64,000 bases of DNA from Lytechinus pictus. Lineage: Eukaryota. Below, one piece after another: positions 57,096 to 63,745 of this stretch (position 1 is the stretch's first letter; each line of letters starts with the position of its first letter). A program made the translations under genes and the position numbers. The notes under the pieces are model-generated. The model searched no databases. It was not told where the DNA came from and was given only the letters and a program-made list of their open reading frames with translations. The stretch covers positions 23,312,001-23,376,000 of the forward strand of contig NC_087262.1 in the NCBI RefSeq assembly GCF_037042905.1. The letters run 5' to 3'.

Positions 57096-58539
57096 CCTTT
57101 TGTAATCATATACTATTACTGAATTCAGTTGTCAATAGTATGTTTGAAATAAAGTTGTTTATCTGGTTTTCACAAACATTCGAACATGCATATGAATATT
57201 AGGTAATTATTTTGTTCCGCATGGGAATATTAAGTAATTATTGTTAGCATGCAAACTACATGTATACTAAATTCAGTTATGTGTTCGAATGTATATAATT
57301 TATTAATCCAACAATTTGATCAAAAACCTTTCTTCCCATAAATGAATCTTGTTATTATTATAACCCATGGTCAGGTGGTATATCTGGGATTTTGATCTCA
57401 AGACGGTTAGTAATCAAAATATATATTTTTTAATGATGTTCATTGTTTTTCTCTCAAATAAAATTCATGCAATACAATTCATCAGGAAGGAAACCAATCA
57501 TACAAATTATGGATTATTGATCGATATTAATAATTTGTTATTAATCAAAGTTAAACCATTAACCGTTAAGCCTCAAACATGCAACCAACACCCGAATGAC
57601 CAAACCTGCTACGTTATTACCAATGACATAGTACTCGGTCATTTGAGTCGGTTAAGTTGGTGTGACTTCAAAAGCAAATGAGAAACAAGAATGTTCAGTT
57701 ATTTAACATGTCATGATGAAGAGGGCAGCTTCCATAATTTCTAAACTTCCATTTTTTACTGTGCATAGTACCACTCTGTATACATGTCTGATTTTTTAAT
57801 GTTATTACGGTACCTAAAATGACAAAATGATAGAAGAAACAACTTGTGTTACTTTACCCAAATTGCTTACTCCATTGACCAATTCGCTCGACTTACTCTT
57901 TCCAATGAAAAATAAAATATTTACAACACAATTATAATTGCAAATATTGTTATCATTATTATCATCATTATCATTATTATTATTATCGAATAAGTATCTG
58001 GTATTGCAAAATCGGAAAAAAAACTGGCATATTGGACCAGATTTTAATGTTATTTACCGATTTTGCAGTGTTTTTCGACATGAACTCCTCGGAGTAAAAT
58101 CGTATGAATAACAGAACACTTCAACGAAACAATATATCATAGAACAGAAAAAGATAATGGTGCTAGAGGACGAGCTGTGATTGGATGTCATGATAAAGCA
58201 ATAATGATTTCTATGCTAAAATCACACTTTCATCGCATTTGTACACGAATAATTTTTTTTTCTTTTGTTGTTGATTTTTTTTTGGAGGGGGATTTTTGGT
58301 CTGATATACACTTGCAGAATGCTGCGTTATTTCGGAACCGAGTACCTGGGGGTCGCAAATTTGGTCTCGAAATTTGCACAAGGGTCCTTGTTTGGAATGA
58401 ACTCTTTCTTAAAATCTTTCTCTGGAATTAGCTCTAAAGATCCCATGACTGGAACAGTCTTTCCCTTAAAACGAATCTCTGAGCTTAGCTGGAATGTTCT
58501 TTGGTTAGAATGGCTTCTTCCTCGAAAATGCTCCCTGGA

Positions 58540-59765
58540 ATCGGCTCCGAAGGTACATCGACTGGGCCATCGACAACATTATTTTAAGGCCTCCTGTGCT
58601 TTAGCTTCAGTGAGAGTTCAGAACGGAAGGTGCGAGCTCCTCTGGCCTCTCCAGTAATCATATCATAATCATCCATATTTGCTGGTTGCGATTTATCTTC
58701 GACATGCTCTGGACCCAACTCCGAAGGTACCTTGAGTGGGTCGTCGAAAGTATCCTTTGGAGGCCTCTTATTTTTCAGCTTTAGGGAGAGTTCGGAACGG
58801 AATCGACCTTCTCCGACCTCCCCAGTAGTCATATCATAATCATCCATATTTGCTGTTTTCGATTTATCTTCGACGTGCTTTAGACTAAACTGCGAAGGTA
58901 CATCGACTGGACCGTCGAAAACATCCTGAACAACATTCGGAGACCTTCTGAACTCTAGCTTCGGAGTGACTTCGGGGCGATAGGTGAGAGCTTCGCCGAC
59001 CGCCCCAATCCCAATCATCAAACGATAATCATCTTTATTGACTGGTTCTGATTTATCTTCGACGTGCTCTGGACCAAACTCCGAAGGTACATCGAGTGGG
59101 CCGTCGACAACATTCTTTTGAGGCCTCCTATACTTTAGCTTCGTAGAGAGTTCAGAACGGAAGTTCTGAGTTCCTCCGACCTTCCCAGTCATATTATAAT
59201 AATTATTTGCTGGTTCCGATTTACCTTCGACGTGGTTTAGACACAACTCCGAAGGTGCATCTGGACCATCGACAACATTCATTGAAGAGCTCTTATGCAT
59301 TAGATTCAGAGAGAGTTCAGAACGGAACCTGCGAGCTTCTTCGACTTCCGATGTCATCATATCACGATCATCTATATATACGGGTTCCGTTTTATTTTCA
59401 GCATTCTCCAGACCCGACTCCGTAAATGCCTCCACTGACATGAATGGGTAGTCGACAACATCTTCAACGAACCCTGTAGGCCGCATGAACTCCAGCTTCC
59501 GGGTGGCTTCGGGATCGTAGTTGAAAGTTTCTCCGACCTCCCCAATCATAATACGATAATCATCCACTTGGACTGGTTCCGATTTGTCTTTGACATGCTC
59601 TAAACCCGACTCCGGAGATACCTTGGCTTGGTCGTCGAAATCATCCTTAACAAACTTTGGAAGCCTCATGATCTTCGGGACTTCGGGATAGTAACTGAGA
59701 GCATCTTCGAACTCCTTGATCATCATACGACAGTTATTCACATCGACATCAATAACTGGGTAATC
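58540..59765 (-). repeat. Coding tandem repeat, 7 units of ~170-190 bp (56-64 aa)
   Basis: Recurring PxxxDDYxMxxGEVGE...(FRSELSLKLK or YxPExTxKLEF)...VVDGPxDVPSExGxEHVEDKSE. Confidence 0.9.
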
Positions 59766-62700
59766 AAGTTGAATGAGATTGTTGACTTCACTTATCATAC
59801 CAGAAATCTCGTTAAAGATGTCATCCATATTAAAGTATTGTATCTTGAATTTGCCAACAGTCTCCCATATCGCTTCAAGCATATCTTCGATGACTTCAAG
59901 GTTTTTTCTGACGTTGAACCTGAGTGAAAAGAATTGAGAAGAATATGATAATCGAATAGAAAATTCTTAGTGTATGTCTCATTTAAATTTGGTGTACGAT
60001 CATCGTACCGCAGCGTAGCCATGGTAAGATATGTACGATTTCCAGAAGCCCCTTTATGGTTTTGTATCTGGACCTCTGTGATGATTATAACACCCCAAGG
60101 GAAAAAAAAGAAACGAAAAAGAAAAAGAAAAAAATAAATGAAAATAATGATAAATAAATACAAATCGTACGATTGCTGTAAATAATGTAAATACAAAAAT
60201 GAAATATATAGCACGTAGCCAGTTACGATGTCACCCCCCGGCAAATCGTAAACTGATCAGGGGGCCGTTTCATAAAGCTGTTCGTAAGTTAAGAGTGACT
60301 TTAAGAACGACTCGTGATCTTTTCTTGTGGTAAATGGTATATTACAAAACGTTCATTGGCGATGGTTTGGCGCGTAAAAAAGGATCACCAGTCGTTCTTA
60401 AAGTCGCCCATAACTTACGAACAGCTTTATGAAACTCACACCTGATTCACTGTACGATGATCGTAGCAAATGTTAACTTAACTATGACTATACCATCAGA
60501 GTAAACATGGCAAAGCCTTCAAATGAACACATAAAAAAACTTGTTCATGGATACCAGATGGGTGGCATTTAATGTTATTTTCTGACTTCGTCATAATTAC
60601 AAAAATTAGTCAGGGCTCCGTTTTTATATTATTGAAATTTTGGTATATGACCATGATGACTGGCTAAAATTATTATTTATTTTAATTAAATTATGCATTT
60701 TTTTTTCAATCTGCACGCAGTTCGTAAATACAATATGTTTCTGGATGTATAAGGATCAACATATCAAATGAACCAACCTTTTAAAATCAGATGACTATTT
60801 CATTTACTATTCTCTTTGCAAATAAGTTCCATTGTTCAAGAAGAGAATATGTTACGCATTGATAGATGAATAAAAACTTGAAATAGTGAGCCAATAGAGT
60901 CAGGAAGATTTACTTTATCATGAATATCAAAGTAAGATTGATAAATTTACATGTAAGTCAGTCAGTCTCGAGTCTATATGTGGAATTCCTAAACATCTTC
61001 CAACATTATTTACATTTTGAAATTGTAATCACAATCCCTGAAAGGTTCTCTGAACCTCCGCTCAGTTAGTTGACCGGTCCAGAACACATAGTAGGTGAGT
61101 GGTGACGATGAACATTGTGCATGGTCGGGCCGAATTTTAACCGGTTCAAAATCCGGCAGGCCATCAGAAAGACCCTTCCCCCATCCCTCCCTGTCGTACC
61201 ATGATTGTTTGGTCGCACCATGGACCTACTTCTTGGCTGGAAAGATGTGTATAAGACCATGTAGTAGGTCCATGATAAAACTTACTTGACCGTGATGAAA
61301 TCTTCGCGGAGTTGACGGAGATCTTCAATTCCGATCGAATCTTCCCTGTCTTCTGGTATCTCTGTCTGCGATGCGTTATATCGCTCTAATAACTTCTTTA
61401 TCACTTTCTGCGATATGAAAAAAGCACGATAGACATAACATTTAACTTCCGGGCGATCCTTTTTTATGATAATACTTTTAAATCGCCTATTTTTTTAAAT
61501 CGATAATTGCATTATTAATTACCTGCAGTGTAAACATGGTATAGTATTTGACTTTGATGTAGGTGATTGCAAAATGCGATCAAAATTTTTTTACAGCATG
61601 GCTTCTTGATATGTCACAGTTTTTTTTTTAATTCGACTAATGCAAAAACATTGTATGGATTGTATTTAATAAAGCAAATCGCATACCGGATCCGGATTTG
61701 ATCCGGAAACTATGCCAGATAACAACTTGGAACAAACGGACATGAACGGATGATCTGCCATCTTGGGAGTGTTTCATCAACATTTGCGTCCGAAAAGTTG
61801 TCATAAGTATCCGACAACTTTCCTGGATTTTGATTGGCTGAGGAGCACTGATACTATCAAAGGTGGCACTATGATTTTTAGGGAGGCAAAATAACATATA
61901 TATGTACATACATTTTTTTTTGGGGGGGGGAGGGGGGAAGCCGGACAAAATATGATTTGCCTGTTTTACAAAATTGAGGTTCAATCCCTCCTGTTCCCAC
62001 TATTTTAGTGACTTATATTGTGCAGAAATCGAGCATGCAGCATTGGTGCATGCCAAAGGTTCCTTCGATTACTCCGACTGCATCAGGAAGCTCCTTTAAA
62101 CACTGGTACAACTGACATGACTGATGGTGGCCTCTGATTTTTGCAGCAATTTAGATATACTTTATTATGCTCTATCGCAAATCGTTGTCTAAAAATGGGG
62201 GAAAAACTAATAGAAAATAAACCCTCAACACATACCTTTGCGCTGAGATCCTTTTTAGGTTTCTTGTCGTGCTCCTAAAAACATGATGGATAAAATGGTA
62301 GGGAGAGGTTAGCACTTTTTTATGATAAGAATCAATAGCTTTCATATTAAGAAAATTTGGAAGAGTTAATGCGTTGCATCATAATATTTACAACATATAA
62401 GGATCAAGGGATGTATTACTATACAATCACATGTCAAATCCTAAGTATATAAAACGTGCCCCATTTATGTATGCTACTAGTAAAGGGGGGGGGGTCTTTA
62501 AATTTCCCAGTGTGTAGGCCTTGTCTAAGCAAGTCCAATGGCCTAATCATAAAGAACATTGAATGGACTTTCATTTGCATAAAAAAGGAAAACAGGTTCT
62601 TTGTGCGCGCCTTTTCAAGAGCTGCTTTTTTCGCGTACATATTTTTTTGGGGTCCCGAAATTTTCGTGGGTTGATGAATTCGCGATTGGAAGATATACCA

Positions 62701-63358
62701 AACACTTCCACAGCATTTCAGAGCAGCAAAATAGTGCAAAAATATGCTCCTTAAAACCCCTATGCTGACGTGTATTTTGTACGTAGATTGTCCATGTAAA
62801 TGAACAGTTATAAAAGTGCGAAAATAGTGGCTTAAATTTCATATTTTTGTACCGTTAAATCTTAAAAATCTATCATGTCACAGTTTGATATGTAAGGGTG
62901 ATCTTACATTTATATGATTATAGTTAAGTTGTGTTTTCATTCATTTTCGAATAGTTGGTTTAAGTGAAAATGTAGAATTTTGTGAAATTTGCGGCCGTTT
63001 TGCAAATCGCGAAATTCGCTAAAATAAAATTACAAAAATTCCAAAATTTCGTATTTACACTATGCGAGAGATTTGTCCCCATCGATCCCCCTCTCTCCCT
63101 CTTAACCCCCCACTCTCTCTCATTTATGCCCCCTTTTGTCTACTGTTTATCCCTCTCTTTTAAGGACAAATTTACCTTGGACTGTCTTTGCTTCGTCTGT
63201 GTACATCCTGTACAAAACAAACAACACTTCTTGAAGAGTCGGATAATGAACCCGGTTGTCGGTACGAGGTTGAATGGAGGTGGTAGAACGATATCGGTTC
63301 GGATAAACCTAAGCCACATCTTTGTTCGCCCGAACTTCCACTCGGTATCCGAATTTTC
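58584..63358 (-). CDS. TRPC-like (short transient receptor potential) channel, 3' four exons; 5' part lies beyond the window
   Basis: Exons 63358-63176 (ENSDTEWKFGRTKMW...LPPPFNLVP: TRP box 1 and 2), 62274-62236 (EHDKKPKKDLSAK), 61407-61286 (KVIKKLLERY...EDLRQLREDFITVK: rib and coiled-coil helices) and 59919-58584 (FNVRKNLEVIEDML... plus repeats). GT-AG introns with matching phases 0, 0, 2. Confidence 0.85.
60260..60442. mobile_element. Harbinger-type MITE in TRPC intron
   Basis: Long inverted repeat GTTTCATAAAGCTGTTCGTAAGTTA...ACTTTAAGAACGAC / GTCGTTCTTAAAGTC...TAACTTACGAACAGCTTTATGAAAC. Confidence 0.75.
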
Positions 63359-63524: not shown

Positions 63525-63745
63525 TGGGTTCCATGACATTTGCTCCGGCGACAATTGCTCCGATGGAAAATCTACACGACTGTTAAACCAAATGTGACAC
63601 CTAACCTCAAAAGCTATATAAACCCTAATCCTAATCTTTACATTATTCTGCAACGAGAACTCTACAGCAATCCTAACTCTAAGTCGATGCCCTCTGAGAT
63701 ATCAAGACCGGGGCAAATGTCACAGAGGCAAATGTCGTGTCACCG
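63525..63745. mobile_element. Small non-autonomous element with GACATTTGC inverted repeats and AACCCT-like core
   Basis: GACATTTGCTCC at the left, GGCAAATGTC twice at the right, CCTAAC/CCTAAT repeats inside; superfamily uncertain. Confidence 0.45.

Follow-up and report, generated by a model that had tools for sequence, protein, structure and literature searches.

A 64,000-nucleotide stretch of the Lytechinus pictus genome (812 Mb), hereafter the window (C18:23312001-23376000), carries at 59919-58584 on the minus strand the terminal coding exon of LOC129282077, a gene of the TRPC family. Most of the exon encodes an array of about 370 amino acids (aa; 369 residues), with six complete tandem units of 55-64 aa and a seventh of 14 aa. 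On balance, we favour reading it as the last exon of a fast-evolving, lineage-specific TRPC gene, whose array would form a disordered, net-acidic extension acting in bulk or through multivalent contacts of low specificity. The gene model is already public through automatic annotation, as the 1,159-aa RefSeq protein XP_063969277.1 (‘short TRP channel 4-like’) with the whole tail included, and the exon is therefore no orphan. The repeat is as yet undescribed, and the literature searched contained no published description of echinoderm TRPC tails.

The repeat exon is spliced onto a TRPC channel

Splicing of four exons (63358-63176, 62274-62236, 61407-61286 and 59919-58584) yields exactly residues 601-1159 of XP_063969277.1. 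A sequence-only reading of the window had proposed that an apparent orphan open reading frame was a TRPC channel tail, joined in phase (AA/G) across a junction at 61286/59919, and each part of that proposal held. The open reading frame at 58584-59882 on the minus strand was confirmed, and its open frame reaches upstream to an AG acceptor at 59920/59919. Contigs assembled from RNA runs X1 (2,214 nt) and X14 (3,151 nt), from two studies of the same species, cover 58300-59919 without a break and then use the joints 59919/61286, 61407/62236 and 62274/63176. The pieces that they skip run from CT to AC on the plus strand, hence GT..AG when read on the minus strand, and every difference between contigs and window is a substitution, with zero indels. 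In a sample of about 6% each of runs X18 and X19, stranded raw reads reach a depth of 1-3x over the exon, and their first mates lie on the plus strand, as expected of minus-strand RNA. The terminal exon is spliced onto the channel and transcribed, with a 3' untranslated region (UTR) of about 630 nt; the contigs extend about 350 nt below 58300, and an ATTAAA lies at 58048. The features of the locus are as follows.

63176-63358, minus strand: TRP-box exon, ENSDTEWKFGR...LPPPFNL..., 61 codons; AG/GT borders; aligned with the TRP box and proline motif of TRPC5
62236-62274, minus strand: micro-exon of 39 nt, EHDKKPKKDLSAK; placed by the contig joints 61407/62236 and 62274/63176 and by the spliced translation
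61286-61407, minus strand: exon with the start of the C-terminal helix, KVIKKLLERYNASQ...REDFITVK, ending on AA in phase 2, then GT; aligned to TRPC5 residues ~715-757
59920-61285, minus strand: last intron, GT..AG, 1,366 nt, skipped in the contigs of runs X1 and X14; neutral benchmark
59694-59919, minus strand: terminal-exon head, comprising the end of the coiled-coil helix and a helical acidic module of ~75 aa, ..YPVIDVDVNN..IKEFEDAL; from homology, AlphaFold2 (AF2) helices and the ratio of nonsynonymous to synonymous substitution rates (dN/dS, omega)
59520-59693, minus strand: unit 1 (U1), A-type head YYPEV, 58 aa; unit map
59328-59519, minus strand: unit 2 (U2), A-type head YDPEA, 64 aa, the most divergent unit; unit map, identities and tree
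59163-59327, minus strand: unit 3 (U3), B-type head FRSELS, 55 aa; unit map
58983-59162, minus strand: unit 4 (U4), B-type, 60 aa, carrying a CAAAAG run; unit map
58803-58982, minus strand: unit 5 (U5), A-type head YRPEV on a B-like body, 60 aa; unit map and tree
58629-58802, minus strand: unit 6 (U6), B-type, 58 aa, absent from RefSeq isoform X4; unit map and isoform comparison
58584-58628, minus strand: unit 7 (U7) stub, FRSELSLKLKHRRP, 14 aa and a TAA stop that is kept in Lytechinus variegatus; unit map
58488-58583, minus strand: post-stop remnant of unit 7, 32 in-frame codons, NNVVDGPVDVPSE..., with a second TAA at the end; Tandem Repeats Finder, DNA matches and UTR-level divergence
57950-58487, minus strand: remaining 3' UTR, end approximate, ATTAAA at 58048; contigs ~351 nt below 58300 and poly(A) signal scan

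The channel part of the protein places the gene, as judged from its sequence, within the TRPC subfamily. A phmmer search of the Protein Data Bank (PDB) with XP_063969277.1 matched TRPC5, TRPC4, TRPC1, TRPC3, TRPC6 and TRPgamma (E from 1e-42 to 1e-20, with TRPC5/4 at ~1e-42) in two to three stretches over residues 27-723, and the next TRP families (NOMPC, TRPM2/8) reached only 7e-5 to 1e-2. N-terminal regions align to TRPC5 residues 35-164 and 224-449 (27.7 and 47.7 bits). The TRP box is EWKFGR, one substitution from EWKFAR, followed by LPPPFNLVP, where TRPC5 has EWKFAR and LPPPFNIIP. The core is homologous to that of vertebrate TRPC4/TRPC5 (and TRPC1) through S1-S6, the TRP box, LPPPFN and coiled-coil, and the homology may take in the ankyrin region and linker helices, to which the N-terminal stretches align. 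The alignment ends at TRPC5 residue 762, which corresponds to query residue 723; as this lies 8 residues inside the terminal exon, the exon begins within the C-terminal coiled-coil helix. At E≤0.01, Pfam reported no TRP_2, Ank or Ion_trans on XP_063969277.1; TRP_2 is only ‘weak’ in the L. variegatus orthologue, and a TRP_2 scan of the genome had no match at this locus. All three domains are recorded for a paralogue and for a Strongylocentrotus purpuratus relative. That Pfam misses the core domains here points to a divergent family member. The genome holds at least 13 TRP_2-domain loci, indicating an expanded TRPC family in L. pictus, with the gene studied here too divergent for the TRP_2 model.

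RefSeq lists five isoforms, XP_063969277.1 being X2, and we compared the sequences of X1, X3, X4 and X5. Isoforms X1, X2, X3 and X5 terminate in the complete tail. Isoform X4 (XP_063969279.1) is missing 63 aa inside the array (189 nt, ~58590-58780) and ends ..FRSELSLKP, which implies an internal GC-AG excision that would take out unit 6; an internal joint of this type was not seen in any of the four RNA runs mapped. Isoform X3 is without the 61-codon TRP-box and LPPPFN exon (63176-63358) and, if made, would be a channel subunit without a TRP helix. An older RefSeq model, XP_054773988.1 (971 aa), ends in a frameshifted peptide equivalent to a 1-nt loss in the unit-4 CAAAAG run (~59135-59140). 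The transcript contigs are free of this frameshift, which points to an assembly error or a rare allele.

Three intronic elements (60258-60435, 61738-61928 and 63526-63578) draw very deep RNA contigs and reads from both strands, with many loose ends, and belong to abundant repeat families. In the first, an inverted-repeat element, Rfam gives a mir-7-like match below threshold (30.5 bits against a gathering score of 51.8), and Rfam and tRNA scans of the neighbourhood returned nothing beyond this hairpin.

Anatomy of the repeat

Tandem Repeats Finder reports a period of 171 bp at 58545-59422 (5.0 copies, 70% matches, score 596), and DNA identity between units is 59-79%. Anchored on the unit heads, the map orders the units A-A-B-B-A-B-B, with A heads (Y.PE..) on U1, U2 and U5 and B heads (FRSELS) on U3, U4, U6 and U7, just as the sequence-only reading had assigned them. 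The repeat that it described is real, although its seven units are six full ones and a stub of 14 aa, which would give 24 full units per tetramer where it had counted 28 copies. Its division into long A and short B units fails, the A units (U1 58, U2 64 and U5 60 aa) not being consistently longer than the full B units (U3 55, U4 60 and U6 58 aa). Both heads are variants of one motif, [YF]R[PS]E[VL][TS].KL..RR. Across 12 full units from the two Lytechinus species, E4 and D20 are invariant, and D45 and V55 are kept in ≥90%.

Unit 7 stops at a TAA in a position where its sister units carry CAA, and the rest of the unit stays in frame for 32 further codons. L. variegatus has both TAA stops at matching places, with a 3-nt deletion between them. 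Read-through of the first stop into the 32 codons was considered and rejected: they diverge at the level of a UTR (9.7%), and their frame is open simply by descent. Over the array itself, the coding frame holds no stop, where the two alternative frames have 27 and 36, so that any frameshift would truncate the tail within ~12-16 codons.

Frame and length are held while residues drift

Copy number did not differ in the related species compared. The L. variegatus orthologue, XP_041485927.1, has six units, the stub and the TAA all as in L. pictus. Orthologous units pair at 99-100% bootstrap, which makes the array older than the species split and shows that its units have not been homogenised since; going by the unit sequences, amplification probably took place long before the two species separated. 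Amino acid identity between the species is 93.6% in the channel core, 90.7% in the tail head and 84.6% in the repeats. The head has a dN/dS of 0.33 and the repeats one of 0.66 (synonymous divergence dS 0.11), the latter not significantly below 1 (p=0.10). Purifying selection between units was also looked for and rejected, with between-unit dN/dS scattering around 1 and third codon positions not the most variable. Allelic differences in the transcripts are five nonsynonymous and no synonymous in the repeats, and no nonsynonymous and two synonymous in the head. Between species, the repeats differ by 7.7% substitutions against 9.3% for non-coding DNA (adjacent intron 8.3%, 3' UTR 11%), and this near-intron rate indicates that repeat residues drift at close to the neutral rate.

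Indels behave differently. The intron at 59920-61285 accumulated 20 indels alongside its 8.3% substitutions, and the flanking introns and UTR together have 33 indels in 2,348 aligned bases, 23 of them of a length not divisible by three. The repeats have one indel (3 nt) in 1,107 bases where 15.6 are expected (P=3e-6), a depletion of about 15-fold, and no frameshifting indel where 10.8 are expected (P=2e-5). Together with the stop-rich alternative frames, this depletion indicates that selection keeps the tail in frame and at full length while tolerating most substitutions. The sequence-only reading had suggested selection on the protein because all indels between units are in frame. That observation is true and follows from the open frame; its conclusion stands for frame and length (0 against 27 and 36 stops, and the indel depletion) and not for the residue sequence, given the between-unit dN/dS of about 1 and the repeat omega of 0.66.

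Several of these results would suit an effectively neutral by-product, in which slippage or unequal crossover expanded the tolerant tail of a young, fast-diverging paralogue without any function of its own. Substitutions accrue at a rate near that of the non-coding benchmarks (7.7% against 8.3-11%), omega is not significantly below 1, the allelic differences in the repeats are all nonsynonymous, unit 7 has already been lost to a stop, the gene lies on the longer branch of a recent duplication, and the older RefSeq model has a frameshift in unit 4. The last of these is absent from the transcript contigs, however, and in 1.1 kb of repeat neither species has a frameshift or a nonsense codon, even though a frameshift would truncate the tail within ~12-16 codons. 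About 11 indels of length not divisible by three were expected and 0 were seen, and since the split each of the six units has kept its single counterpart in the other species. The depletion of indels contradicts a purely neutral expansion, and we consider this explanation decidedly improbable.

A specific docking or phosphorylation array, in which a short linear motif in each unit recruits several copies of a partner (kinase, adaptor or scaffold), makes a different demand on the residues. Candidate motifs are the FRSELSLKL / YRPEV..KL head, VVDGPxDVPSE and an acidic DDYxxM/I. Such an array would account for the positions that recur across the 12 units (E4, D20, D45 and V55), and for the slower evolution of the half of the unit containing the head and VVDGP..VPS, the same half that matches a segment kept single-copy in a related tail (below). 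DDY-x-x-hydrophobic also occurs in four of the six L. pictus units. Yet L. variegatus has another residue in place of the DDY tyrosine in two of five units, the basic residues preceding the FRSELS serine differ from unit to unit as read from the alignments, and between-unit dN/dS of ~1 comes without an excess of third-position changes. Motif-level constraint was rejected, heterogeneity among columns between species not being significant (permutation p=0.78), as was a YxxPhi or pYxxM motif in each unit, which is not kept across both Lytechinus species. Of the two functions that the sequence-only reading had offered, the data favour the putative disordered spacer over the docking or phosphorylation array, which we hold to be unlikely.

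The array is probably disordered

The array is a net-acidic polyampholyte (D+E 72 and K+R 51 of 369 residues, 33% charged, pI 4.9, grand average of hydropathy (GRAVY) -0.85), rich in Pro, Gly and Ser. The description of the repeats as acidic thus holds for their net charge, with the qualification that basic residues are abundant as well. Across residues 680-1159, AF2 predicts helices only in the coiled-coil and head (pLDDT 50-60), including a long helix at 701-738; pLDDT over the array is 26-38, with zero secondary structure. Modelling one unit with a 12-unit alignment gave a pLDDT of 56, a pTM of 0.12 and no structural elements. Disorder as suggested by these outputs is in keeping with the composition of the array and with how it evolves, and the array is probably an intrinsically disordered tandem-repeat region by this modelling.

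Each unit might instead fold into a small repeat domain of a type not yet described, arranged as a solenoid or as beads on a string. A length of 55-64 aa is within the range of small domains, and the unit boundaries are regular. Set against this are the lack of predicted secondary structure and the low confidence of AF2, for the whole tail and for the unit with its 12-sequence alignment alike, the charged, Pro/Gly/Ser-rich and hydrophilic composition, the between-unit dN/dS of ~1 and the absence of a Pfam or PDB match. We give a folded unit very little credence.

The unit has few relatives

The sequence-only reading did not recognise the unit, and neither did the databases. Pfam, run on the tail and on all 12 units, gave nothing above threshold, with one sub-threshold T4_MRH match in one unit; a profile of the unit had no match in the PDB at E≤1, and the ESM Atlas no usable match for the unit. 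A DNA search of the whole genome with units 3-6 recovered the array and the post-stop remnant only. The tail protein matched its own locus and, through its first 83 residues, the terminal exons of two paralogues, at distances of 54 and 118 kb. With no copies elsewhere in the genome, the unit is neither a transposon nor a satellite family. Searching for homologues of the tail region brought back the protein alone. HMMER, run exhaustively against 1.84 billion representative proteins, found the protein itself and two fragments from one ENA assembly (P0002 and P0003), which match the head and the start of unit 1 only. From these searches, the unit appears so far confined to Lytechinus.

The tail-head module is more widely shared, being common to the L. 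pictus gene, its echinoid paralogues, Diadema, P0002 and P0003. Diadema antillarum XP_071488004.1 and both fragments have the helical head ..YPV[IL]DVD.. followed by Y-[RE]-P-[EK]-V. Unlike the tail of L. pictus, theirs are ~140-155 aa long, hold the segment in single copy, and run on into a proline-rich stretch and ..SLxLxMAxMFxGGRT.., absent from the L. pictus gene.

A neighbouring gene is a paralogue (XP_063969246.1; XP_041485518.1 in L. variegatus). In a tree of core domains, it and LOC129282077 are sisters at 100%, with S. purpuratus outside and Diadema as outgroup, and LOC129282077 has the longer branch (0.28 against 0.16). Two neighbouring TRPC-like paralogues, each with a 430-aa acidic tail of four ~69-aa units, have their terminal exons at the following places.

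L002:457-1830 and L003:451-1815, at C18 ~23.49 and 23.43 Mb: paralogue terminal exons

The paralogue shares the contig, exon plan and homologous tail head of LOC129282077, and its terminal-exon tail comes close in length (430 against 444 aa). This tail is also acidic (pI 4.2) and also tandem, with four units of ~69 aa. The paralogue unit, EESLNVVTRIQRFIGVG..PPEVPPDPS..DDYDNIP..EEPRRTSS, has no significant similarity to that of LOC129282077. Homology between the two units, suggested by eye from shared SExSL, PxxVP and DDYD, was rejected as unsupported at an hhalign probability of 0.1%; with the unit profile run against the whole paralogue tail, the only signal was E=0.029 at the single RPDATPELELKK segment, in the stretch NRPDATPELELKKPP. 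The paralogue tail is the better conserved of the two between the Lytechinus species (90% against 85%). Another L. pictus model, XP_063969492.1 (677 aa, ‘FK506-binding protein 5-like’), shares a 90%-identity cluster with XP_063969246.1 and is probably a fragmentary or misnamed model of the acidic tail of a paralogue.

The two Lytechinus sister genes, products of a duplication in that lineage, may have built near-equal tails (444 and 430 aa) from dissimilar units, in a group whose relatives have ~150 aa, with length or charge being what was selected and the tail serving as a spacer or tether. We regard this scenario as distinctly doubtful. If the two arrays are independent, selection would have acted on tail length or charge as such. 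If the scenario is true, the tail could be a molecular spacer or tether setting the distance of the channel to a structure beneath, and repeat amplification a quick route to length.

Probable growth of the array from a tail segment

The sequence-only reading had also proposed duplication of an ABB block, which predicts that U2 pairs with U5, U3 with U6 and U4 with U7. Neither the identities, taken over whole units, heads and bodies, nor the tree recovered the U2/U5 and U3/U6 pairs as a set. By unit bodies, U5 is nearest U6 (82%) and farthest from U2 (66%); by heads alone, it is nearest U2. A maximum-likelihood tree of the 12 full units groups U3, U4 and U6 (74%) with U5 as their sister (80%) and leaves U1 and U2 outside. 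Only U4/U7, which agree in both head and body, and the U2/U5 heads fit a block duplication, and we rejected it. A simpler reading of these patterns is stepwise duplication in which the B head derived from an A-type unit. Unit 5, with its A-type head on a B-like body, would be either a retained intermediate or a recombinant.

Fragment P0003 suggests where the first unit came from. Straight after the conserved head it reads ELNYRPEVAPKPRRKEIGQDVIDGPPIVPPDP, and hhalign aligned the first 36 positions of the unit profile with its residues 64-96 (E=5e-5, probability 67%). This match of the first half of the unit to a single-copy segment suggests amplification of an existing piece of tail. Diadema reads MYEPKVPVKVPPP at the corresponding place, below significance. 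On moderate evidence, the array probably grew by tandem amplification of an ancestral single-copy tail segment resembling YRPEV..PK..RR..DVxDGPxxVP.

Discussion

We propose that the array would hang below the cytoplasmic coiled-coil of the tetramer as four tails with 24 full units between them, and that it may act through length, charge, flexibility and weak multivalent contacts and not through a strict residue motif or a folded domain. Several results weigh against this proposal, or against the history suggested for it. The tail is known at the level of sequence and RNA only. The AF2 input was a single sequence or a shallow alignment, which makes it a weak predictor of disorder. The repeat omega is not significantly below 1, so that function at the level of residues cannot be shown. 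The first half of the unit (head and VVDGP.DVPS) changes about half as often as the second, at 19 of 170 positions against 37 of 185 (p=0.03, post hoc), so that a short conserved motif may yet be present. The proposed ancestral segment depends on one ENA fragment at 67% probability, and the unit profile had no match in the Diadema tail. Confinement to Lytechinus is limited in two ways: the representative library holds one protein per 50%-identity cluster, a set on which absence elsewhere is unproven, and the S. purpuratus relative was compared through 741-aa X2 isoforms that end at the coiled-coil exon.

Most TRP channel tails are disordered and absent from structures, and what they do is poorly understood. 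Vertebrate TRPC4/5 tails are not known to be repetitive and end in the PDZ ligand VTTRL. The L. pictus tail likewise follows the coiled-coil, ends in ..KHRRP and, as a tandem repeat of 55-64 aa, has no similarity to the solved vertebrate TRPC chains beyond residue 723. The Drosophila TRP tail carries Lys-Pro dipeptide repeats and an 8-residue DKDKKPG/AD repeat. It is likewise a TRPC-family tail extended by lineage-specific, hydrophilic and presumably disordered tandem repeats, which makes it, by analogy, the closest functional counterpart. The L. pictus unit is 7-8 times longer than the Drosophila repeat, net acidic where that is basic, and apparently unrelated in sequence. As general context, disordered regions in TRP channels are the subject of a review by Goretzki et al. 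(2021, J Mol Biol 433:166931), cited in PMC8857925.

The array is a lineage-specific curiosity and not a new kind of system. If our reading of its origin is true, it is a natural case of a TRPC tail tripled in length by amplifying its own segment. With frame and copy number held while residues drift, and with a sister gene carrying a different repeat of similar total length, the locus may serve as a model of how disordered regions evolve in ion channels. It raises the question of whether the length and charge of a tail, or a specific motif within it, would tune the localisation or gating of the channel.

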